The notes under the pieces: model-generated
Seen by the model: only the letters and a program-made list of their open reading frames with translations
Database searches by the model: none
Told to the model about the DNA's origin: nothing
In this document: piece by piece, positions 16,195-42,762 of the stretch
Numbering within the stretch: position 1 is the stretch's first letter
How the letters are laid out: every line of letters starts with the position of its first letter
Made by a program: the position numbers and the translations under genes
From: Trichosphaerium sp. ATCC 40318
Taxonomy: Eukaryota > Protista > Tubulinea
Direction of reading: 5' to 3'
DNA length: 64,000 nucleotides
Assembly: GCA_038496445.1 (NCBI GenBank)
Contig: JALMLS010000423.1
Location: 62,001-126,000, forward strand

Positions 16195-16425
16195 GCATAC
16201 AGTTTCAGAAAGAACGTGAATACAACAGACAGCATACATGTACTTTTTTTTTTGTAGGAAATAAAATTCTTTTACTATAAGCAGCCACACTACTGCAGTT
16301 TACAAGATTATAATCACATCGTATTAGTGATAGTTGTAGTGTTTTTTGGGGTTTTTTTGTTTGTGTTTATGATGAGTAGTATTCAGTCTACAAAAAAAAA
16401 TGACGTGTAAGAATATTTTAAGAAT

Positions 16426-19400
16426 TCAAGACGTTTCGTTTAGGAGTACACTTGATTCCTCATCCTCGCTACTCTCTTCGTCTTGACTTTCCTCATCGTC
16501 ATCATCACTATCATCATCGACATCACTATCAGTATCATCGCTACTCGATTCACTTCCAGTGATCTCCCGCATTGGAATGATATGTTCTTTAGAGTCAGTT
16601 TCCACAGAATCAGTTTCATCATCTGTTGTAGAACGACCTTTACCATTTGAGGCAGGAGATTTTACGTCAACTTAAAACACAAGTAAGTACTAAGCATTAA
16701 GGCCTTGGATCAAAAGGCAAAGGCAGTGATAACAAGAAACAAAGTAAAGAGAAGAAGAATTTGTGGGTTGGTTTTTCCTTTTTTTTTCCCCCTTTTGGAC
16801 AGAGTTCCTCCGGAGATAATTATGTTTGGTTATTGCGTACGTAGAATGCTGGATTCTAACTTGAATGCTGATAGATCTGTGCTGTATGGAATATCATTAG
16901 TTCCTTGATCCTCTGTATTCAAATGAGATGCTGGCGGTTGTAAGAATGGAGCTCTGTATTTATTTGTTAAGTCTGTTTTATCTTTTTTATTCGGTTGTTC
17001 AACCTACAAGTGCAACAAAACGTAAGCTATTAACAACAAAATGAAGAAGAAATAACGAGGGTAGTAATAGCCTCGTTGTGAAGAAAAGTTGAAAAGAGAA
17101 ATCTAGAAGTGACAATCGATAGTTTTTTTTTTTTGAGTACTGATCTTCACCCAATGGAATTTGGGTTGATTTTAATTTGTTACGTACCAATGCACCATAA
17201 GTATGTAATGCTTTGTTTGAAGTCATCATGTAAACAAAGAAGCAAACGGAAAGGATCAACATTATAACAATAATGATACCATATTGGAACTAAGGATGTT
17301 AGAGATTTGTAGTGAATTTTTTGTTCACTTTTAATTACCTCGTATGTTGCAAACACTCCAATAGATACAAGTTGGTATAATATGAGACCAATGTTAACAC
17401 TGACGAAAATAGTTGTAAAATAATTACCACCTCCTAAGAAAGAAGCAAAGTAAGAACAAAGAACACTCCGAAAAAAAAAGAAGAAAAAAGTTGTGGCAAA
17501 CACAATGTCTTAGATGAGTTCTTAAGTACCTTCAAATGGTGTCTTATCAGCCCATATAATATTATACTTATAAGATAGGATAGCGAGACCAAAGTAAATT
17601 ATTGCAAAAGGCAAAATAAGTGGTGCTAGAGTAGAATAGATTTGGACAATCATCAACACCAATAAAATACCAGCATAACTAAACAAAAGAATTAGTTTTG
17701 GTGCTCATCCTTCACTTAAAAAATCACGTGATGGAGTAAAAATATACTTCAAAGATTGTGATATATTAATACGTACTTAGTAGCATAAGAAAATGCACCT
17801 GACATCCACACAGCGCGCTTAGCACGCTTTGATTTTGCCAAAAATCTATCAAAAATTAAGCCGATTATGAGCGGCACTGGACGCCACAAGCTCATCATTG
17901 ATCCAGCCAAACCAACAGTCATAATATAGTTTACAAAGAAAGATGCTTGCTGAGGAAGAGATGAAGCAAGTAGAGAAACAATAGACTGAGGACTATCAAT
18001 AATTGAGTCCAATGCTTTGAATACTGATCCAGCAATCGTTGAAATGAGTAGAACGTTGAATACAAGGAAACAAAAGTATTTAACTGATGTAGACCTAAGA
18101 GAAATATTAACTTAAAGAGCTGTAGTACATCACGAAAGGTAAAGCAGACAGAAAGCTACAAAAAAAAAAGGTTTCTGTTGAGTTTTTTTTTAGTTCAAAG
18201 ATTTTACCTGTCTTGTTCGCTCTGTGCTGCTGGTAATTGTAATCCTGACAAGAAACGAAGTAGAGGCACAAGGATAATCATGAATACAATCAAGACAATA
18301 ACAGGTGCATAACCTACACAAAGACAAGAGTTAGTCACTACCGAGTACAAATAACAGTTTAACTGAGACAAATGCGTGTTTAAAACTTTACCTTGTATCA
18401 ACCCTCTCACTGCAGGATCAAGATCGGTATCTAGAAAGTCGCTAGGGTAAAGAAGTTAACACCAGAGGTTAATGTAAGTGTGGATAAACAAAAATACTTA
18501 CAGCCCTGGAACCATTGCTAAAGTCTCAAGGTTTGCAAAACCTTGTACGAAAATAATAGGAACAGAATAAAAGAAGACAATCAAGAAAGAAATAATGAAT
18601 ACTATTAATCCTCTAAAGAATCTACTTATTGTAGTTCCTGTAAGATTATCCCAAATAATATCTCTAAAAAACGAAATGAGCTGAGGTACGCTCAAACCAA
18701 ACGTTCAAAACAAGTTTTTTTTTTGGGTGCTTTTTTTGTTTGCGTACCTTGGTTCAGGGGCGTGCTCTACTAGCCATTGTTCGTTTACTGTGGATTGTGA
18801 TAGTTTGGTAGCTTCAGATATACTCTATATTTTTAAGATACGAAATGAGAAAGGAGTCAAGTTATAGATTGTTGTTTCGGACTTCCAATAAAATTTATAA
18901 ATTGGATTTTTGCAGAAGCAGTTTCTGGAGTATTGTGGCGTAATAGTACCTTGCATGTGACAAAAGCTGTTGGTGTTGGTTTAATATACGAATCTACTGA
19001 AGAGAAAAGATCAGAAAGGTCAGAATCCTTATCCTTCATGTCATTTGCGTATGTATCTATAGAAAAAAAAGTAAGCACAAATATCGACCTTTCACCCATT
19101 TCTGGAAAAACAAACTAGCCCCACAACGAGGTTGAAATTGAAGAGCTGTTATTAGGTATATAGATGCAGATTTCTAGGAGATGTATACCTCGCAGTTTTT
19201 GTGTAAACTAAAAAAACGCTTTCAAAAAAAAAAAAGAAGAAAGTACCAATAGAATCGACCTCTTCGCCACCACAAAAAGATGTCTTATGAGTAGGACGTT
19301 CTCCATCTTTGAAGTAAACAGCAAGTGACTAAAATAGTTCTTAACACTTGAAAAAAAACAGCCAACAAGTATTGAACGTACGCTCTCCAAATTGTTTAGA

Positions 19401-22362
19401 AGTGCAAGTCTTTGGTTATGTCTCTTCTCTAGTTTTGGTGCTTCTTGTGCTCGATGAACTTCAATAATCTTATTGTTAAATGAAGGGTTAAGATAAGCCA
19501 TAATGACTTCATCATAGAATTCACTTGAATTGCCTACAAGCAAGCAATCAGATTACAACTAAAAAAACCCCGAAGAAAAACACGTGTGTTAAGTTTTTTT
19601 CTCAGTTTTATACACAAGCACTCAAGATTGGTATCTTACCTCCTGTGTCAACTCCAATGATTGTACCTTTTCCACTGTAATCAGGGATATCTGTAATCAT
19701 GGATGTATAATTCTCAGGCAACTTAGGATTTGAAAGATGTTCTCTTCGTCTGAGCAAGAACTATAAAAAAAACGTATCAATACAGACTGTTATAAATGAC
19801 CACGAGAAGAGTGATGTCTTACCTCGTCATAAAATCTCTTCAGAATAAATATTGTGGCAGCTGTATTAAATATAACACCAACCATCTGTAACATTAATGT
19901 GAGAGGGAGTTATTTAGACTTCAAATCGTACGTGAAACCAGAGAAATTGAGATCCTCTTTCAATATTCGCCATAGACAAGATTTCCAAGCCTAACACTTA
20001 TCAGCAAACTATCGATAAAGTGATCATATTATCACGTACCTTTTACGAATAACGAGTTATCTTCTGGCAGATCTTTGTTCTTTCCAGCAAAAACTAATCG
20101 AATAAGAAAATTGTTACTCAACGAGAACTATTTTAAGCAAAGCGTGATTCTGTTATTTTTGCGTTTGCATTGACGTACTGTTGACGAACAGAATAGCACA
20201 GACACCGTATACAGCGTATATACAGACCATAAAGAAGGAGTATTTAAGGAACTTAACAAATACCCAAGCATCTAATCCGTGTGTCTCAAAAAGCAAGTCT
20301 TCATTGTAGAAAACAGTCTGGTAGAGAAGAGAAAAAATACCACGTGGTGGCGGAGCAGGTTGCCTGTTATCCCTAAAAATACAAGTTAATACAGAGCATT
20401 AAGGTATATAAAATGGTTTAAAGTACCTCCAAACTTCAGGTTCGTCAAAGGGTTGGCAATTTGATTCGTAGAATTTTCTTGTAAATTTAAAACATCTGGT
20501 AATAACAAACCCAATGAAAAATATGATTGCCAAAACAACATTGATTGCAAATGTTGTAAGGAATGCAGCCAAATTAGTAGTAGCTAATAAATATTAATAC
20601 GAAGAAAAAATACGCCAGGTAATGACTAGTATAGCTTGCTTACCTTCAACGAGCTCTGCTTCAGAGTCAAATACTTGAACTCGTCCATTTACAGAATCAA
20701 CGATAATTGTAAAATTCGAGAATGGGTCATCTGTAAGTCCCAACGGTCCTTTAAATGACTATACAACTAATGTTAGATTTCACGGATATTAGATGAACTA
20801 AAATAAACCAACCTCGTCACCAGTTCCTTCATCTCCGTACTTTGCAAAAAAGTTACCTGAAAAACAGTTAAAAAATAACAAGAACCAATTGTTGTTTGAG
20901 TTGATAATAGACTTCTATTCAAAATTCACGTGTACGTACCAAATTTATCGTAAACCTTAACTTCATTCTCTCCAACATCTGTAACCCAAAAGAAGCTCAC
21001 ACGATCTGATGCAGTGACGTAGGTAGGATCAGTAAAGTCAGTTATTATTGTTCCAACAGAAGCGGTATTCGCATTAGCATTCCATAACTGTACTCGCTTA
21101 TTTCCACGATCAACTACAATGAGCTGCCTACGAATAAAAAAGTAAGCAAAAATCAACAATAGGTTACAAGAGGAAAAATTATCCAAAAAAACTTACTCTT
21201 CAGCGTCCATGTAAGCAATGCCAGTTGGATTCCTCATTTTATCTTAACAAACCAAGTTAATATCAACGCTTTACGAATGTATAGAAGATAAAGGAAAGAA
21301 AGAATTGGTTTTTTCGTTGTTTTTGTATGCCATACAACCCTCCAATCCGAAAAGAAAGAGAGTTGTTTAACAAAATAAAAGTTCTTCTTTTTTCTTCAAG
21401 TTAACGCGGATTACAGACGTACCTGACGCAGTACCATACGATCCAAAGGAGTATAGAACAGAAAGAGAGGATGCATTAAAGACTTGAACGCGATGATTTC
21501 CACTGTCCGCAATAAACAGTAGATCGCTCTCTAAGCTTACACAAATACCCTAATAAGACGTTTAACGTAACAGAGTGTGTTATGCTTGGAGATCATTAAA
21601 AGTTGATTAATTCTGTGTACCTTTGGAGATATAAACTGTCCAGCGCCTACACCAAGAGATCCGACTTCTTGCGTTAAATTACCTTTTGTAGATTAGGTTT
21701 TGTAACGAGTTGAGAAAAAAAAGTATCTTTTTTGTTGTGTTCTCGTTTTCACAATTCTTACCAGAACCATTGGCTATCTGTATTCTATGGTTAAGAGTAT
21801 CCGATACATAGATTGTAAACGTGTCATCATCATAAGAAGCGGCAATCCCTTGAGGAAACGCTAAAGAACCCACTGCGTCTCCACTTGAACCAAACTCGCG
21901 TATAAAAGAACCTTAGGCGGTATATTAGTCATTTTAAACAACTCCGAGAAAAATTTTTGAACAAAAAAAGCGTCCTGTACGCGACACTCCGAGTTTATGT
22001 CGATTAAAGGCGGCTAGACGTACCAAATACATCAAGTACTTGCACACGATTGTTTAAAGTATCGGCTACAGCGATACTAAGATAAAAAAGATCGAATTAG
22101 CGGGTAACGAAGTTGTGTTAAAATAAGTTATCTTACTGGTTTGAAGTAACGTTTTCTGTACTGTTAAAGACGGTAAAGAACGTAACGTCATGTGGTAAAC
22201 TAAATTGGCCACTACCTGCTCCGTTACCTCCAAAATTACGCTCATGATCATATTTCTGGGCGCCTAAGCGTGTTTTAGAGGTTGCATTTTGATAAGGAAA
22301 GTGAACGTGCCAGTGAGGGTTACAAAGGCCCCAATGATGGCTAACACAATAAGTAATCTCAT
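16426..22362 (-). CDS. Signal peptide + NHL-repeat beta-propeller fused in frame to a CSC1/OSCA/TMEM63 calcium-permeable mechanosensitive channel
   Basis: MRLLIVLAIIGAFVTLTG, then NHL blades (GSGQFSLPHDV..VADTLNNRVQV; GSLAFPQGIAA..VSDTLNHRIQI; GQFISPKGIC..IADSGNHRVQV; MRNPTGIA..VVDRGNKRVQL; FKGPLGL..DSVNGRVQVFD). A phase-1 intron near 20585-20644 joins ..ELVE to ATTNLAAFLTTFAINVVLAIIFF (TM0). OSCA motifs HGLDAWVFVKFLK, LSMANI, YTSMITDIP, TAFVT, APEPRDIIWDNL, LPQQASFFVNYIM, YSTLAPLILPFAIIYFG. Stop TGA at 16426-16428. Confidence 0.85.
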
Positions 22363-23239
22363 GTGTATGCCAACGAGTTACTTGTTGTTACAGTCTTAAA
22401 ATTAATGAGAAAATAGGAACGCGGGGATTAAAAAAACCGGACTTAACTTAGAATAAGTATGATCCAATATTACGCGATGTCCAGATTAGTATATATGCCA
22501 CAATTTTCCATCTTGATAGAGAATGAAACCAGATACGTTTGAAATAACTAAGCGGAATAGCGCTTTCGTGGTACTATTTACTTTTTCAGGTTTTATCGGA
22601 AATTGTACAGTTTTAGACTCACATTATTTAATAAGGACTAAAGTTGTCAACATTTATGTCGTCAACTTTTAAAAGAGATAAAAGTACAAGTATAGTAGTA
22701 TATACAATATCGTACCGGAGAGACTACTTGTGGCGATTTCGGGAGTTTAAACTAATTGGGAAAACCATGATCACGTCAAAAAAAACTACTTTGTATTCCA
22801 CTTTCCAAGGTAGTATTCTACTATTTAGAACCAAGGCGTAATTACTTCTTTTTCTAGGAGAGATAAAATAAGTGTCGAGATTACAAACCATAGCTACCTC
22901 TTACGCTTTTGATAGCCTTTTCTATGTCGACCTTTGAGCAAGCAATATTTTACAAGTATATATTCTCATGAATACTTTGCTAATTACTTCGCACAACCTT
23001 TAAAAATTACAGTTCTTACCATGGTTATAATGACGGTGAACTATCATCTTTGCTGTCCTCGACCATAGATTATATTCTCCGTGTTCTTTATCGTTGACAT
23101 ATTCAGGCTTGATTTAAATTGTCTAACAATTATTTTAATATGCGGCATTTGTCATTTATGTCGTCAACTATAAATCAACATGCAATAACCAATACTCCAT
23201 TGGATTTATGCTACAGTTTTAAATAACGTTACCTATTTT

Positions 23240-23655: not shown

Positions 23656-23976
23656 TTAATATACACAAGCGCCTGTGACAAACACATGCCGTCAAGTTGT
23701 AGTTTAGAAGGATTGTAGTTAACATTCAATGTTATTATTTATGTTGCCATAACGTACAAATGGCTGTTTCTTTCTCTATGACCAAAGAATAAAACATTGA
23801 AATTGGTTGATGAGGCAGTTTGTTCCTAGAACAATATGTATCAAGCAGAGCAGCCAAAATTTTCGTAAGCACTCTCTGTAATACTGCCACTTTTGCAGTT
23901 TATTTTGAAGAGGTGTAATGATTGTTAAGCGAAGGTACGGCCTGAGAAAAGGAATGGAGTTTATTTGCTTTTTGGA

Positions 23977-25322
23977 TCAGAAATGGAATGATTTAGCTTC
24001 AAAAGAATCGAAACAACTCTTACTATCACCACCTGTTGGTGATGCAGTAAACTTAAAATCAAAACTAGCATTGAATTTGAACAAAACAATCTCATCATTC
24101 TTAAACTCACGTTTACGAATAACATCCCCTTCCATGTTGTACTGTGTTTCAAAGCCTTCTCTTTTACCATCTTTGAATTCAACACTTAATTTCAATTTGC
24201 CATTAGTGTGGAATTCCTTTGCTTCTCCTTCTAACAGTCCATTGACGTACTGCCGTTCTTCAAGAATTGATCCATTTTGGTGAAAACTCCTGTAGTCTCC
24301 ATTACGTACTCCCTTGATATAATTTTCTTCAATTGACAGCTCTCCTGACTCATGATAATGTTTAGAAGTACCAGAAAGTACACCATCTTAAAATACTCTT
24401 CTGAGAACCATTGGTTCATCGGTCTCCTTCCAAACTTTCGGTCGATTAAACTGAGGTCTTCCTTCCGTCGACCGTTTTTGTACCACTGTTTACGACATTT
24501 TATGGCTCCACTAATATCATATGTACTATGTATCTTTAGCATTCCACATGGATACCATTCCTTGAGCTCTGTAGGTTGTTTATGATAAACCAGTGTTCCA
24601 TCTGCTACATAAGATTTACACTCTTGAACAACATCATGTTTGTATGTCGCTTCTGTCTGGAGGTTTCCGATACTCTCATGCCATGCTTTATACATGCCTT
24701 CTTTTAGACCATTGACGTATGTCACTTCTAGTGAAGGAGATCTATTTTTGAAGTAACAAACAGTTTTTCCGTGTTTTAACCCATTTTTGTAGTAAGAACC
24801 TCACGTGGTTTGTTATCTTCAATCTTGCCAAACCACTCAACAACCTTACCATCTAACTTGCCTTCTTTGTAATGACTTGTACGCGAGCTTAAAATAGTAC
24901 TACTGTCCCAACGCGTACTGGGACGTATCTCAGTTCGTTCTCCATGTTTAAGGCCATTCTTGTAGTGAGCTTTTAACATCAATAAGTTTTCAGAATCAGA
25001 ATCCCAAACAATGTATTGTCTCAGCTCTCCTTCCAAAATGCCATTCGAATAAAAGGCTGTTGTACGAGTAGAGCTAACAGTTAAGAAAGGTTTGAAACTA
25101 AACGTGAATAAGCCATGTTTTTCCAAGTTGTTATTAAATCGAGAAGTCACTGCCGTTTGAAAGCATAACAACGGCCATTTCTGTTCAACGTCTTCGTCTA
25201 AGTTGTAGATAGCGTGGTGTAACTCGATTGGTAGATCAAGTAAAGCCAACGAACTACAAAACAACTTAAAACACGTTTTTACGCATGAAATCAAACCTTT
25301 TTGACTCTTTCACAGCCGACAT
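23977..25322 (-). pseudogene. F-box-like + MORN2 (YwqK-like) repeat gene, copy 1, with two 1-nt frameshifts
   Basis: ATG 25322 (MSAVKESK), 43-nt intron, LLDLPIELHHAI, MORN2 units (YKNGLKHG, YVNGLKEG, FKDGKREG). Single-base deletions near 24798 (REV/SYY) and 24388 (YFK/DG) relative to the paralogues. Confidence 0.8.
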
Positions 25323-38010: not shown

Positions 38011-39085
38011 TCAGAAATGGTATGATGTATCTTCAAAAGAGTCAAAACTACTCTTACTATCTGCATCACCATTTTTTGTTGTTGGTGACAATGCAATAGG
38101 CTTGAAATCAAAACTATGACATGGAACTGTGCCATTCTTGAACACATGTTTCAATGAGTGCTCCTTGTTCAGCTTCGAAGTACCAGAAAGTACACCATCC
38201 TCGAAATACTCTTCTGAATGAAGTTGTCCTGAACCTAACCATTTTCTTGAGTAACCGTTCTTTTTGCCGCGTTTGTAGTGACACTCTTCCATTTGTTGAC
38301 CGTTTCTAAACCACCTCTTATGACATTCAATGTCATTAATATCATATGTATTATGTCTTGCAAGTGTTCCATTTGAATACCATACCTTACAGTCTTGAAT
38401 AATATCACATTTGTATGTCAATTCAGTCACCAATACGCCTTTTAACCATTCTGTTTGCAATCCTTCTTTTAGACCATTGACGTAAATGGTTTCTGATGAA
38501 AGAGATCCATCATCGCAGTAGCGAACAGTTTTTCCGTGTATTAACCCATTTTTGTAGTAAGACACCTTACGTAGTTTGTTATCTTCAATATGACCATACC
38601 ACTCTACAACCTTGCCATCTAACTTTCCTTCCTTATATTGGCTAGTTTGTGAGGAGAAAACACTATTAGAAAGACCCCTGAAGTGTATCTCAAGCTGTTC
38701 TCCATGTTTAAGGCCATTCTTGTAGTGAGCTTTTAACACCAATAAGTTTTCAGCATCAGAATTCCAAACAATGTATTGTCTCAGCTCTCCTTCCAAAATG
38801 CCATTCGAATAAAACGCTGTTGTACGAATACAGCGAACAGTGCCGGAATAACCGAAATCTGAAAACGTGAATAAGCCATGTTTTTCCAAGTTGCTATTAA
38901 ATCGAGAAGTCACTGCCGTTTGAAAGCATAACAACGGCCATTTCTGTTCAACGTCTTTGTCTAGGTTGTAGATAGCGTAGTGTAACTCGATTGGTAGATC
39001 AAGTAAAGCCAACGAACTACAAAACAACTTAAAACACGTTTTTACGCATGAAATCAAACCTTTTTGACTCTTTCCCAGCCGACAT
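38011..39085 (-). CDS. F-box-like + MORN2 repeat protein, copy 2 (intact), single 5' intron at 39017-39059
   Basis: ATG 39085 MSAGKESK, intron GTTTGA...TGTAG restores the frame to SSLALLDLPIELHYAI. The reading frame is open to TGA at 38011. Confidence 0.85.
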
Positions 39086-39987
39086 GTCCTTCTTGGAAAT
39101 AGTAACTTGATTATCACGATGTGTCTACAGCGGTGTTTTCCAAAACCAGGTGTTTACCAACTATCAACTGTTGCGTAGAGGGCAGTTTTTATAAACAAAA
39201 ATAGATAGCTTAACCACTTTAAGACATGTACAAAATGTGATTATTTTCTTCGAAATAGTACTTCTCGAACATTGTAAAATAGCTTAACCGTTTTTAAGCT
39301 ATGAGCAAACTGACGTACGATTTGACGTGAAATAATGCCTTTACAACTCTGCAAGCTTGCTGATAGTGTACCCTTATGGAGTACTTTACATAAGCATAGG
39401 AACAGAAGGTCACGTGCATGCTACTAATAGGAGTGGCATTAAAATGTAGGCTTAACGTTGTTACGGTGTCGACTCTCTTAAACGTTTCCGCTAGTGTACT
39501 GCCTTTGCGTGCGTAGGAGACAAGTACGACTACTTGTACTCGTTTTAGGAGCGTTGTTTCCAATGTAAAACATGTGAGGTACACTCAATCCAAGCCACAA
39601 CTTCTACAAAGAGCCTTTGGTCGTTCTAGTGTTTGTCATAACGACATTTGCTGGTGTTCTTGAAGAGTACTCACAATAAATACCAACTGTGTGAGAATGA
39701 AATTTATTATTACAGTTAGTTGCACGCTTGAAAGTTTTGATTGCAGCATTTCAAAGTATGGAAAAATTTCCACTTTTCACATGCAAATCACGTGATTGTC
39801 AAGACTGCGCAAATGTAGTAAATTCACAGCCGGGTATTTGTTGCACTATTACAAATACAGTATTTGAACCCAAAGCATTATCATATACCTAAACAGATAC
39901 TAACCAGGTGGTGTATAAGTGGGTTTTATTTAATCTTAATTCAACAACGCTGTTGTTTAATTGGTTACAAGTTAACCGTGTAACACC

Positions 39988-40932
39988 TCATTTTGTGTAC
40001 CTAACAAGATGAAAACTATCTAGTGATTTAATAGCATCTGTAACTTGTTTGCAATGGTGCACAGTAATGGTATGAACTCCAGATAACGCTTTGATACCAT
40101 CATCTGTAACATTAGGACAAACCCATAAGTAAATGGTATGAACTCCAGATAGTGCTTCAATACCAACATCTGTAACACCTTGACAATTAAAAAATCTTAT
40201 TGTATTAACACTGGCTAATGTCTTGATGCCATCATCAGTGACATGTTCACAACTGAGCATGTCAATTTGATGAACACCAGATAAAGTTTTGATACCATCA
40301 TCTGTTACATTACGGTTATGCAGTGAAATTGTGTGAACACTAGCGAGCGCTTTGATACCATCATCTGTAACGTTATCACAATCTGTTATTGAAATGGTAT
40401 GAACACCAGATAACGCTTTAATACAATCATCTGTAACACCTGGACAATTGTTTAAGTCGATTGTATGAACGCCAACTAACGCTTTGATACCATCATCCGT
40501 AATGTTATTACAATCCTTTATTGTAATTTCATGAACACCAGCAAGCGCCTTGATGCCATCATCTGTAATTTGTTGACACTCGCTTATATAGATTGTGTGG
40601 ACACCAGCCAAAGCTTTAACACCCTTGTCTGTCACTGTTGCCTTCCATAATGTGATCTTGTGTATTCCAGCAAGTTGTACGAGGTGATCATCAGTAACAT
40701 TCTCACAACTACGAAAGTCAATGCTGTTAACAATGTTGAGCGTTGTAAAATCGACATCAAGCGAGTCATTACTCTTTAGTGTAAGATCTTTTACTCCTTG
40801 TAGGTACTTGAAGTGTTTTTGCTTGATAGAGAATAGAAGAATAACGTTATTCGTCTTTATGAGGTGTGGTTGCTTTTTGAAAAGCTCTTTAAGCTTTTTA
40901 GCCGTTTTAACGATTGATTTCCCTTTGTACAT
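39988..40932 (-). CDS. Intronless LRR protein (VTDDGIKALxGVHTI repeats), paralogue of 41998-42762 lacking the F-box
   Basis: About 10 repeats of 24-25 aa. The cap KTAKKLKELFKKQPHLI..FRSCENVTDDHLVQLAGIHKI is nearly identical to the neighbouring gene. First ATG gives MYKGK. Confidence 0.75.
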   Translation of the reverse strand: MYKGKSIVKTAKKLKELFKKQPHLIKTNNVILLFSIKQKHFKYLQGVKDLTLKSNDSLDVDFTTLNIVNSIDFRSCENVTDDHLVQLAGIHKITLWKATVTDKGVKALAGVHTIYISECQQITDDGIKALAGVHEITIKDCNNITDDGIKALVGVHTIDLNNCPGVTDDCIKALSGVHTISITDCDNVTDDGIKALASVHTISLHNRNVTDDGIKTLSGVHQIDMLSCEHVTDDGIKTLASVNTIRFFNCQGVTDVGIEALSGVHTIYLWVCPNVTDDGIKALSGVHTITVHHCKQVTDAIKSLDSFHLVRYTK

Positions 40933-41997
40933 GTTTGACTTGATGCTGTATTGCGTTATTTGTAATGTGCAACGTAGCAAGGTTACGTTATGTGGTCTTT
41001 ATAAGTATTTCCACTAAAATATTTGGGCGAAATACAGCGGATCTCTGAAGCAACCAAATCTTGAACAAACTGCACTTAAACAAACCGAAAACTGACATTA
41101 CGTATGTACAGTGCCAAAACAGGTCTAGGCATTACCTTATACGCCTACATACTAATAAATTACGCTATTATTGTTACAACTAACGCTACGTATCTCTCCA
41201 CGCGTTTTCATCTTTCACGTGCCCTTCAACGTTTCTGATGGCGACTTACACTCATTTAAACTCGTATAAGAACCTTTGCACGTTTTGTATGTCTAAACCG
41301 CTTTCTTTTCGTTGTATTCTTAGGTAGCTGGTGTTTAAAGCACCCAAAGTCATTTGCGACACTCAGTTGCGCTACCATCGCCCTAGCAGCAATCTTGACC
41401 ATTATATTACGGTTGCCCGCTGTTCGATTTTTACAGAACTCCTAAACCTGCTCGCAATGAGATTCGTAATGCTGCTCCTACCACCTCCCTACGCCTCTGC
41501 TTTCCATCTAATGATATGGAAACCATTTGTTTGATGTCGCTTCTTTGTTTCAGCGGCATACTAAAACCACTGCAATCACGTGATATTTGCATAGATAAAA
41601 GCTGGAACAGGTTTTGATTAATTTGTTAAATGCAAACCCACTCTACGTTCCATATTCCAACTACATTGCTTGCTATGACTGATCTAGAATCTTACGATAG
41701 CACTTTAGAGAAACCATAGATTTCGGATTGATTGATAAAAGAAAAGGAACGTGTTTCTGAAAAGTGCACATATGACAAATACCTCAAATGCACATCAATT
41801 GGTAGAGTATTAACTGAATACTTGCATGAATAAAAGGCGGCTCTGAAAGGGTACTGCATACCAAAGAGAGTAAGTACACTTCTCTTACATAGTATCGTTT
41901 CTTTATTTGTACACCTTCAAAAAAGCCTAATCAAAAACTAGCTGTTGGTATCATAGCTCAACAACTAGAATCATAACGCTAAATTTGCCTTGCTGGT

Positions 41998-42762
41998 TTA
42001 AATCATCAATATGTGCAATGTATGAACACCAGACAGTGCCCTTATACCATCATCTGTAACACGTCCACAAAAGCTCATCGAAATAGTATGAACTCCAGAT
42101 AGCGCTTTGATGCCATCATCTGTTACACTACAGCCACATAATGTAATAGAATGAACGCCAGCTAGCGCTTTAATACCCTCATCTGTCACTTGTTTGCAAT
42201 TGCTTAGCTTAATTTTATGTACACTAGCCAGCGCTTTAATACCATCATCTGTAACTTGTTGACAATTTCGTAAGTCAATTGTGTGGACACCAGACAACGC
42301 TTTAATACCCTTATCTGTCACAGATGCATTCCATAATATGATCTTGTGTATTCCGGCAAGTTGTACGAGGTGATCATCAGTAACATTCTCACAACTACGA
42401 AAGTCAATGCTGTTAACAATGTTGAGGTTTGTAAAATCAACATTGAGCATGTCATTTTTTCTTATTTTTAGATCATAAACTCCTTGCAGATACTTGAAAT
42501 GCTTTTGTTTGATAGAGAATCGAAGAATAATCTTATTCGTGTGTATGAGGTGTGGTTGTTTTTTGAAAAGCTCTTTGAGCTTTTTAGCCGTTTTAAGGAC
42601 AATTGTCCTTCTGCTCACGTATCCCATGTGCTGTGTTGCGATATTTGATATCAATTTCGATGTGTGAACAACTGAGTGCATAGTTAGGAGCGAAACATAC
42701 CGCAGAATATGAACAACGACTTCAATAGGTATTTCATCAAAGAATGCGCTGTTTTCGTTCAT
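41998..42762 (-). CDS. Intronless F-box/LRR protein
   Basis: FDEIPIEVVVHILRYV..VVHTSKLISNI F-box, then the shared cap and about 6 LRRs. Confidence 0.82.
   Translation of the reverse strand: MNENSAFFDEIPIEVVVHILRYVSLLTMHSVVHTSKLISNIATQHMGYVSRRTIVLKTAKKLKELFKKQPHLIHTNKIILRFSIKQKHFKYLQGVYDLKIRKNDMLNVDFTNLNIVNSIDFRSCENVTDDHLVQLAGIHKIILWNASVTDKGIKALSGVHTIDLRNCQQVTDDGIKALASVHKIKLSNCKQVTDEGIKALAGVHSITLCGCSVTDDGIKALSGVHTISMSFCGRVTDDGIRALSGVHTLHILMI

Follow-up and report, generated by a model that had tools for sequence, protein, structure and literature searches.

OSCA/TMEM63 channels are, to our knowledge, held to be gated by bilayer force alone, and we know of no member that carries a structured outer domain. 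Canonical members begin 3–25 residues before their first transmembrane helix, TM0, in line with the very short N-terminus that the initial annotation of our locus had given as the rule. A short N-terminus typifies the family but does not define it. OSCA1.2 has an extracellular N-terminus, a peripheral TM0 that does not line the pore and no structured extracellular domain (PMC6235563). TMC, TMEM16 and OSCA proteins share a fold (PMC11534332). TMC-1/2 with their tip-link partners and NompC with its ankyrin spring offer an analogy, and an analogy only, for gating that is coupled to structure beyond the bilayer: their tether is a separate subunit or a set of intracellular repeats, whereas the protein described here has a predicted rigid extracellular propeller within the channel polypeptide.

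The TRIM-NHL proteins (Thin/TRIM32, TRIM71/LIN-41, Brat and TRIM2/3) are the best matches of the NHL exons of this locus (E-values from 1e-27 to 1e-17) and have the same six repeats. Their propellers are cytosolic, C-terminal and RNA- or protein-binding, and are part of E3 ligases. In contrast, the propeller studied here is N-terminal, lies behind a predicted signal peptide, contains N-x-S/T sequons and continues into a channel. As the nearest solved NHL relatives are cytosolic, they give no hint on its ligand. The nearest analogue as an outer input is PknD of M. tuberculosis (PDB ID 1rwi), which exon 4 matched in the PDB with an E-value of 2.6e-4, a membrane protein with an outer six-bladed NHL-type propeller beside a transmembrane helix. 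We take the PknD propeller to be extracellular, and we know of no ligand for it. PknD is a bacterial, single-pass protein with a kinase output, whereas the propeller here is linked to an ion channel.

We built the gene by hand within a 64-kb window, the whole stretch of DNA that was analyzed. It occupies positions 22362..16426 of the minus strand, has 29–30 exons and encodes a product of ∼1132 residues (Table 1). A single open frame of ∼1132 codons runs from an ATG at 22362 to a TGA at 16426, and every intron except one has GT..AG borders. The 5′ UTR contains no ATG and has an in-frame TAA 18 nt upstream of the start codon. A tblastn search with the model located no second copy of the gene within the window. 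The protein has the same full core as OSCA1.2, OSCA3.1/ERD4 and TMEM63A-C, consisting of RSN1_TM, the cytosolic IL2 domain and RSN1_7TM. It differs from canonical OSCAs by ∼320 extra N-terminal residues, a predicted signal peptide followed by an NHL propeller of six predicted blades, and by a long acidic C-terminal tail. With ∼320 residues ahead of TM0, it departs from the family pattern of a very short N-terminus lacking a structured ectodomain.

Table 1. Features of the NHL-OSCA gene (positions in the window; contigs and depth from runs X1, X2 and X4)
Feature	Position	Strand	Details and basis
5′ UTR	22363..22413	(-)	∼51 nt; length estimated as X1 contig (3491 nt) minus exon sum
Exon 1, predicted signal peptide	22311..22362	(-)	End placed from X1 and X4 depth
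Intron 1	22264..22310	(-)	47 nt, probable GC..AG; placed from depth arithmetic and X2 piece end
Exons 2–10, NHL blades	20644..22263	(-)	Pfam, PDB matches, blade alignment, spliced contigs
Junction intron	20584..20643	(-)	60 nt, GT..AG, phase 1; between last NHL exon and TM0 exon
Exons 11–15, TM0 + TM1 + TM2 (RSN1_TM)	19823..20583	(-)	Pfam, BLASTP
Exons 16–20, cytosolic TM2-TM3 domain (PHM7_cyt / IL2)	18748..19760	(-)	phmmer
Exons 21–27, TM3-TM10 with pore helices (RSN1_7TM)	17188..18663	(-)	Pfam, PDB, conserved columns
Exons 28–29, cytosolic C-terminal tail	16426..17003	(-)	Model; unspliced-form stop at 16426
Optional 3′ intron	16388..16451	(-)	GT..AG; X1 and X2 have loose ends at 16450 that correspond to sequence from 16387 down

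Homology searches, run on single exons or with proteins of the library, matched every part of the OSCA core (TM0-TM2, the IL2 domain and RSN1_7TM), which bears out the assignment of the channel half in the initial annotation. Exon 12 matches Pfam RSN1_TM with 43.3 bits (cut-off 27) and exon 11 with 20.6 bits over profile positions 1–35, position 1 of the profile falling on residue 6 of exon 11. Hydropathy peaks are found at residues 331–349, 419–437 and 473–491. Canonical OSCAs, for example from Physarum transcripts, begin at model residue ∼323: in the BLASTP alignments, residue 3 of the library protein P0008 pairs with model residue 323, and residue 4 of P0151 with model residue 325. The model shares 33% sequence identity over ∼670 residues with the amoebozoan-type proteins P0008 and P0009 and with P0151 from Physarum. 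The exon-wise Pfam match to PHM7_cyt is faint (14 bits); with phmmer, residues 492–690 hit the corresponding region of 74 OSCA proteins, the best at E 1.9e-24. RSN1_7TM is recognized in exon 24 (99.2 bits, E 3.5e-28, cut-off 28.7), exon 25 (44.6 bits) and exon 21 (21.5 bits), and an atlas search with exon 24 again returned this domain. The closest solved structures are those of OSCA3.1/ERD4 (E 3.5e-16, exon 24), and 39 of the 48 columns conserved in at least 80% of the family are kept.

The Pfam NHL profile matches exons 4, 6 and 8 with 21.7, 32 and 18 bits, respectively (best E 1.1e-07), and single NHL exons align with several blades of the solved Thin/TRIM32 (E 1e-27) and TRIM71 (2e-26) propellers. 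Alignment of the blades places six NHL repeats in register at residues ∼28–321, so that the "about six" blades noted initially can be counted as six. These matches suggest a closed six-bladed propeller as the predicted fold. By simple rules, residues 1–19 resemble a signal peptide (hydropathy 2.13, an arginine at position 2 and a hydrophobic core), with likely cleavage after ..LTGA at residue 19, T-G-A preceding Gln-20. This assignment depends on intron 1, for which GC..AG borders at 22310..22264, with exon 2 starting at 22263, are most likely. The depth bin 22210–22400 contains 144 covered bases in both X1 and X4, which fits 52+54+38 and not 39+46+38, and an X2 piece ends at 22261, within two ambiguous letters of the acceptor at 22263. 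A GT..AG intron (GT at 22323, AG at 22256) was rejected, as it predicts 123 covered bases compared with the 144 seen in the two runs; the GC..AG choice also yields the better signal peptide.

Six N-x-S/T sequons are located in the first ∼320 residues and three in the other ∼810, making them ∼5 times denser in the propeller. TM0 starts within ∼5–8 residues of the last propeller strand and is followed by positively charged residues. Given the N-out orientation of OSCA1.2 (PMC6235563), the predicted signal peptide, the positive charges after TM0 and the sequon density in the propeller, we infer by analogy that the propeller faces outside.

Exon 10 ends with ...GTT GAA G at 20644, the junction intron reads gtaagc...ttattag, and exon 11 starts with CT ACT ACT at 20583 and contains neither a stop nor a methionine codon. 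The phase-1 intron between NHL and TM0 hence keeps the frame with no stop and no separate ATG, exactly as first described from the sequence. Run X1 contains one intron-free contig of 3491 nt (depth 854) that lies on exons only and crosses the junction, and X4 contains one of 3279 nt, likewise on exons only, that crosses it as modelled; the two splice 20643..20584 exactly. The run type "RNA" is a guess, and we took the contigs as cDNA since all introns are absent from them. In the contig record, the piece from exon 12 and that from exon 8 are 314 nt apart, the sum of exons 9, 10 and 11 minus the intron, and depth bins with 158 and 115 covered bases correspond to exon 11 (157) and exon 10 (115). 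Twenty-nine contig joints have CT..AC ends, equivalent to GT..AG on the minus strand, and the introns among exons 2–10 are skipped in X1, X4 and X6. With the junction spliced in the X1 and X4 contigs, the fusion represents one mRNA and not two genes.

A contig that spans two genes is in itself no proof of a single transcript, and merged models do exist in sequence libraries, P0026 (see below) probably being one. We nevertheless consider it very improbable that neighboring genes were joined here by the model together with a chimeric transcriptome assembly. There is no intergenic space: what lies between the two parts is a canonical 60-nt intron, which two assemblies differing in length and depth splice precisely, with the frame kept. 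TM0 lacks a separate start codon, and the topology is coherent, a signal peptide being what a large N-out domain needs.

Comparison of the runs with the window revealed 23 distinct exonic differences, of which 22 are synonymous; the propeller has six, and every one of them is synonymous (6/6). The indels, among them all five of X2, are intronic. In this frame, purifying selection acts on the propeller as well as on the channel half. Taken together, the spliced mRNA contig, the single-frame selection acting on both parts and the lack of an independent start for the channel place the predicted signal peptide, the propeller and the channel on one polypeptide, and confirm the fusion proposed in the initial annotation.

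The same polypeptide could in principle be a precursor that leaves an ordinary OSCA, the propeller being cut off after insertion of TM0 or produced separately from transcripts that keep the junction intron. Retention would end the frame after five codons and yield the predicted signal peptide and propeller only, the gene is alternatively spliced at its 3′ end, and the contigs are compatible with an additional channel-only or propeller-only isoform. However, depth over the junction intron is zero and no contig retains it in X1 or X4, and the few residues between blade 6 and TM0 include no dibasic motif and no other evident cleavage site. We thus regard a precursor as improbable, if less so than an assembly artefact.

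The combination of an NHL propeller with an OSCA core appears to be unprecedented, in keeping with the initial annotation, which knew it from no characterised protein: exon-wise searching detected no NHL repeats in the 150 closest representatives of the family or in 31 further homologues, and a literature search did not return the combination. One predicted protein, P0026, has a β-propeller-type region ahead of RSN1_TM, PHM7_cyt and RSN1_7TM. We rejected it as a precedent since it has no TM0, its RSN1_TM match begins only at profile position 42, and its WD40 region is of the cytosolic WDR55 type; judged from these features, P0026 probably consists of two merged gene models. Other long OSCAs (P0040, P0104, P0136, P0139, P0148, P0140, P0064 and P0043) owe their length to insertions in loops or tails and not to N-terminal domains. 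Metagenome contigs were scanned with exon 12 and with aligned sequences from the region of exon 24, and neither scan returned a relative. The closest fragment, P0001, is a 1078-nt metatranscriptome piece that does not include the N-terminus.

What could such a propeller do? We lean toward a single protein in which the outward propeller serves as a binding platform that biases or places the OSCA channel. The signal peptide would carry the propeller across the membrane, consistent with the N-out topology of OSCAs, and TM0 would act as a stop-transfer helix, leaving the positive residues that follow it in the cytosol. The propeller, presumably glycosylated, would then be placed outside the cell or in the lumen, right over the peripheral TM0. 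The core would most likely form one cation pore per subunit, with membrane tension or osmotic stress as the opening stimulus, as in other OSCAs. The propeller may attach the channel to the outside, candidate partners being glycans of the cell coat or substrate, a prey surface or a secreted protein, and could, via TM0, bias the gating or keep the channel at sites of contact.

An equally plain possibility, which we rate lower, is that the architecture is real and gating does not involve the propeller, which would instead aid folding, dimer assembly or sorting, protect the pore mouth or anchor the channel in the cell coat; the channel would be gated by bilayer tension only, as in other OSCAs. OSCA/TMEM63 channels are gated by lipid force and need no ectodomain, and the helix that carries the propeller here, TM0, is peripheral and not pore-lining in OSCA1.2 (PMC6235563). 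The acidic Ser/Asp/Glu tail resembles a sorting signal, suggestive of regulated trafficking. On the other hand, the near-zero linker to TM0 would hold the propeller rigidly at the outer face of the channel, which a sorting tag would not need, and the constraint on the propeller is as strong as that on the channel, judging from its synonymous differences. Were the propeller a sorting or assembly device only, the domain architecture would still be new, and of modest interest.

The binding-platform reading, which we prefer, has a stronger variant that we think unlikely, in which the rigid propeller binds an outside partner and pulls through TM0 on the pore, so that gating would depend on a tether or ligand and not on bilayer tension only. 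If true, it would make the protein the first of the OSCA/TMEM63 channels to carry an extracellular receptor of its own, and such channels with different propellers could provide an amoeba with contact-specific calcium signals. A propeller of ∼300 residues fixed on TM0 is a natural test of outside control of the OSCA fold and of the role of TM0 in gating. Amoebae have to distinguish between substrate, prey and osmotic change, and the protein would also widen their repertoire by a novel type of surface receptor.

At its 3′ end the gene has two forms. The gene, its junction and a stop at 16426 stand as initially modelled, the stop as one of two forms: the X4 contig is continuous over 16410–16670 and keeps the 3′ intron, whereas X1 and X2 splice 16451..16388, so that 16426 is not the sole end. 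The protein accordingly terminates in ...EDEESN when the intron is spliced and in ...EDEESSVLLNETS when it is not, and the end of the tail is an Asp/Glu/Ser-rich run.

The gene comprises 29 coding exons in our hand-built model (30 if an optional 3' intron is counted), which are joined through introns of 46–190 nt (GT..AG borders in all except one) into a single open frame of ~1132 codons. The initial annotation had placed the boundary between an NHL propeller and TM0, the first helix of an OSCA/TMEM63 channel, at a phase-1 intron, and we find this junction to be exact. Exon 11 contains neither a stop codon nor a Met, so that the channel part lacks a separate start near TM0.

Features of the NHL-OSCA gene and the evidence on which each is placed
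Feature	Position in window	Strand	Evidence
Single intron-rich eukaryotic gene	22362..16426	minus	exons joined by hand, refined with transcript evidence
Exon 1	22362..22311	minus	depth arithmetic
Intron 1, 47 nt, GC..AG	22264–22310	minus	inferred by depth arithmetic in two runs (X1, X4)
Exon 2 start	22263	minus	depth arithmetic
Exon 10 end, ...GTT GAA G	20644	minus	sequence
Junction intron, 60 nt, GT..AG, phase 1	20643..20584	minus	sequence
Exon 11 start, CT ACT ACT	20583	minus	sequence
Optional 3' intron, overlaps stop codon	16451..16388	minus	spliced in X1 and X2, kept in X4

Propeller and channel are encoded by one transcript. Sequencing run X1 yields one contig of 3491 nt (depth 854) and run X4 one contig of 3279 nt, both composed of exons only. 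CT..AC ends, corresponding to GT..AG on the minus strand, are seen at 29 joints. The exon 12 and exon 8 pieces lie 314 letters apart in both contigs, exactly the sum of exons 9, 10, and 11, and the X1 depth bins 20410–20609 and 20610–20809 contain 158 and 115 covered bases, compared with 157 for exon 11 and 115 for exon 10, with nothing from the intron. Contig spacing and depth bins establish the joint across the junction intron, which is itself deduced rather than directly displayed. The RNA label on the runs is a guess, and we assign the contigs to cDNA because every intron is absent. The same eight differences from the window occur in both X1 and X4, which therefore represent a single strain and no more than two data sets. 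As both intron-free contigs cross the junction, the single fused gene proposed initially stands; the architecture is confirmed as real and expressed, and it is unlikely that the fusion is an artefact. Also unlikely is a precursor that is cut, or a transcript that is spliced, to give a secreted propeller: no form retaining the junction intron occurs among the contigs. Hypothetical retention of this intron would stop the frame after 5 codons, leaving a secreted propeller without the channel.

Both ends of the gene were refined. At the 5' end, X1 and X4 cover 144 bases in bin 22210–22400, and we rejected a GT..AG alternative for intron 1, which predicts 123. A piece from X2 (organism B) ends at 22261, within two ambiguous letters of the exon 2 acceptor. 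Intron 1 apparently uses a GC donor, in contrast to the GT of the remaining 28. Given this GC..AG intron, the predicted N-terminus carries Arg-2, followed by a hydrophobic core and the residues ..T-G-A ahead of Gln-20, and by simple rules would read as a textbook signal peptide. The 5' UTR taken from the contig is ~51 nt long and free of ATG, with an in-frame TAA 18 nt upstream of the start codon. At the 3' end, the terminus first proposed holds for the X4 form, which ends in ...SSVLLNETS; splicing in X1 and X2 shortens the last residues to ...EDEESN. The final ~60 residues of the cytosolic tail (16426–16640, minus strand) are 48% Asp/Glu and 30% Ser/Thr, a composition reminiscent of acidic-cluster, casein-kinase-type sorting signals; endosomal or TGN trafficking of the channel may therefore be regulated.

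Domain assignments were made exon by exon on the spliced model. Pfam NHL matches fall in exons 4, 6, and 8, and single NHL exons each match 3–4 blades in the NHL propeller structures of Thin/TRIM32 and TRIM71 (E values of 1e-27 and 2e-26). When the N-terminal part is divided at each repeat start, six units of 42–57 residues result, and these align in register. RSN1_TM is found in exon 11 (from profile position 1) and exon 12 (43 bits), and RSN1_7TM in exons 21, 24 (99 bits, E 3.5e-28), and 25. The cytosolic domain, which is finely split over exons, reaches 14 bits in the exon-wise Pfam search; taken as one block, residues 492–690 match the corresponding region in 74 OSCA proteins. The channel part shares 33% identity with ordinary OSCAs over ~670 residues, and residue 323–325 of the model aligns to residue 3–4 of two library OSCAs, P0008 and P0151 (Physarum polycephalum). 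Physarum transcripts are among the nearest channel sequences, and the closest solved structure to exon 24 is OSCA3.1/ERD4 (E 3.5e-16). The protein keeps 39 of 48 conserved columns (residue shared by ≥80% of 65 family representatives; one of these columns is an alignment artefact at a start Met), and the channel core looks intact.

Both halves are under constraint. Compared with the window, the runs carry 23 distinct exonic differences, 22 of them synonymous in the modelled frame (the sole replacement is S851N); all six differences in the propeller exons are synonymous, and all five X2 indels lie in introns. This synonymous bias and the confinement of indels to introns show that propeller and channel are coding and constrained in one frame. 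Among runs X2 and X6 over 16410–22400, organism B (X2) carries the same gene at 95–99% identity, with changes almost all synonymous and indels confined to introns. Some X2 contigs retain introns (e.g. 22022–22261 and 21196–21383), and this run must therefore contain DNA or RNA that has not been spliced.

With 300 residues placed before an N-out helix, a signal peptide is required, and the model has a putative one. R/K-rich residues follow TM0, six of nine N-x-S/T sequons fall within the first ~320 residues, and the last propeller strand is only ~5–8 residues away from TM0. OSCA1.2 has an extracellular N-terminus, with TM0 as an additional helix at the periphery and no structured extracellular domain (PMC6235563), whereas here an NHL propeller of ~300 residues precedes TM0. 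From the N-out orientation of OSCA1.2, the putative signal peptide, the basic residues after TM0, the sequons and the short linker, we infer that the propeller sits directly on the outer or luminal face, beside the channel.

We searched for precedents using single exons, residues 1–322 or library relatives as queries. Exon 24, used as the query in an exhaustive HMMER search of 1.84 billion representatives, gave 1197 matches, the best with 51% identity, and proteins of this organism are therefore absent from the searched library. An NHL-like region was found in none of the best 150 of these 1197 matches (phmmer, residues 1–322), and the extra length of long OSCA matches corresponds to loop or tail insertions. 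PF01436 is present in none of the 31 OSCAs in the matches listed from P0009, the closest full-length relative. Our literature searches returned no paper combining RSN1_7TM with 'NHL repeat' and nothing relevant on an OSCA with a propeller or extracellular domain, and metagenome scans found no relatives in metagenome contigs. P0026 (970 aa) was rejected as a precedent: it combines a WDR55-like cytosolic WD40 with an OSCA core that lacks TM0, its RSN1_TM match beginning at profile position 42. Two gene models have probably been merged here, a caution for domain-pair censuses. Within this exon-wise searching, the NHL-OSCA architecture appears to be without precedent, and distant lineages may share the fusion.

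The core is predicted to act like other OSCAs, each subunit containing a cation pore that opens under tension or osmotic stress, and in the simplest reading the propeller would be a putative binding platform on the outside. It may link gating or channel placement to an external partner, as a tether or through ligand modulation; the strong constraint and a rigid attachment that lacks a linker speak for this reading. Alternatively, the propeller could serve assembly, sorting or protection, a reading favored by the peripheral placement of TM0 and by the lipid gating known for OSCA channels. The propeller-bearing variant appears new within a known channel family, and its function is directly testable.

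Elsewhere in the window, two ORFs upstream of the gene (23961–25294, minus strand, and 38011–39117) read like MORN-type repeats, the latter with a faint MORN_2 match. Two long ORFs (39988–42762 and 62209–63927, minus strand) are rich in LRR_6, and the second has an F-box in front of these repeats (PF12937, PF00646), consistent with expansion of an F-box/LRR family in this genome.
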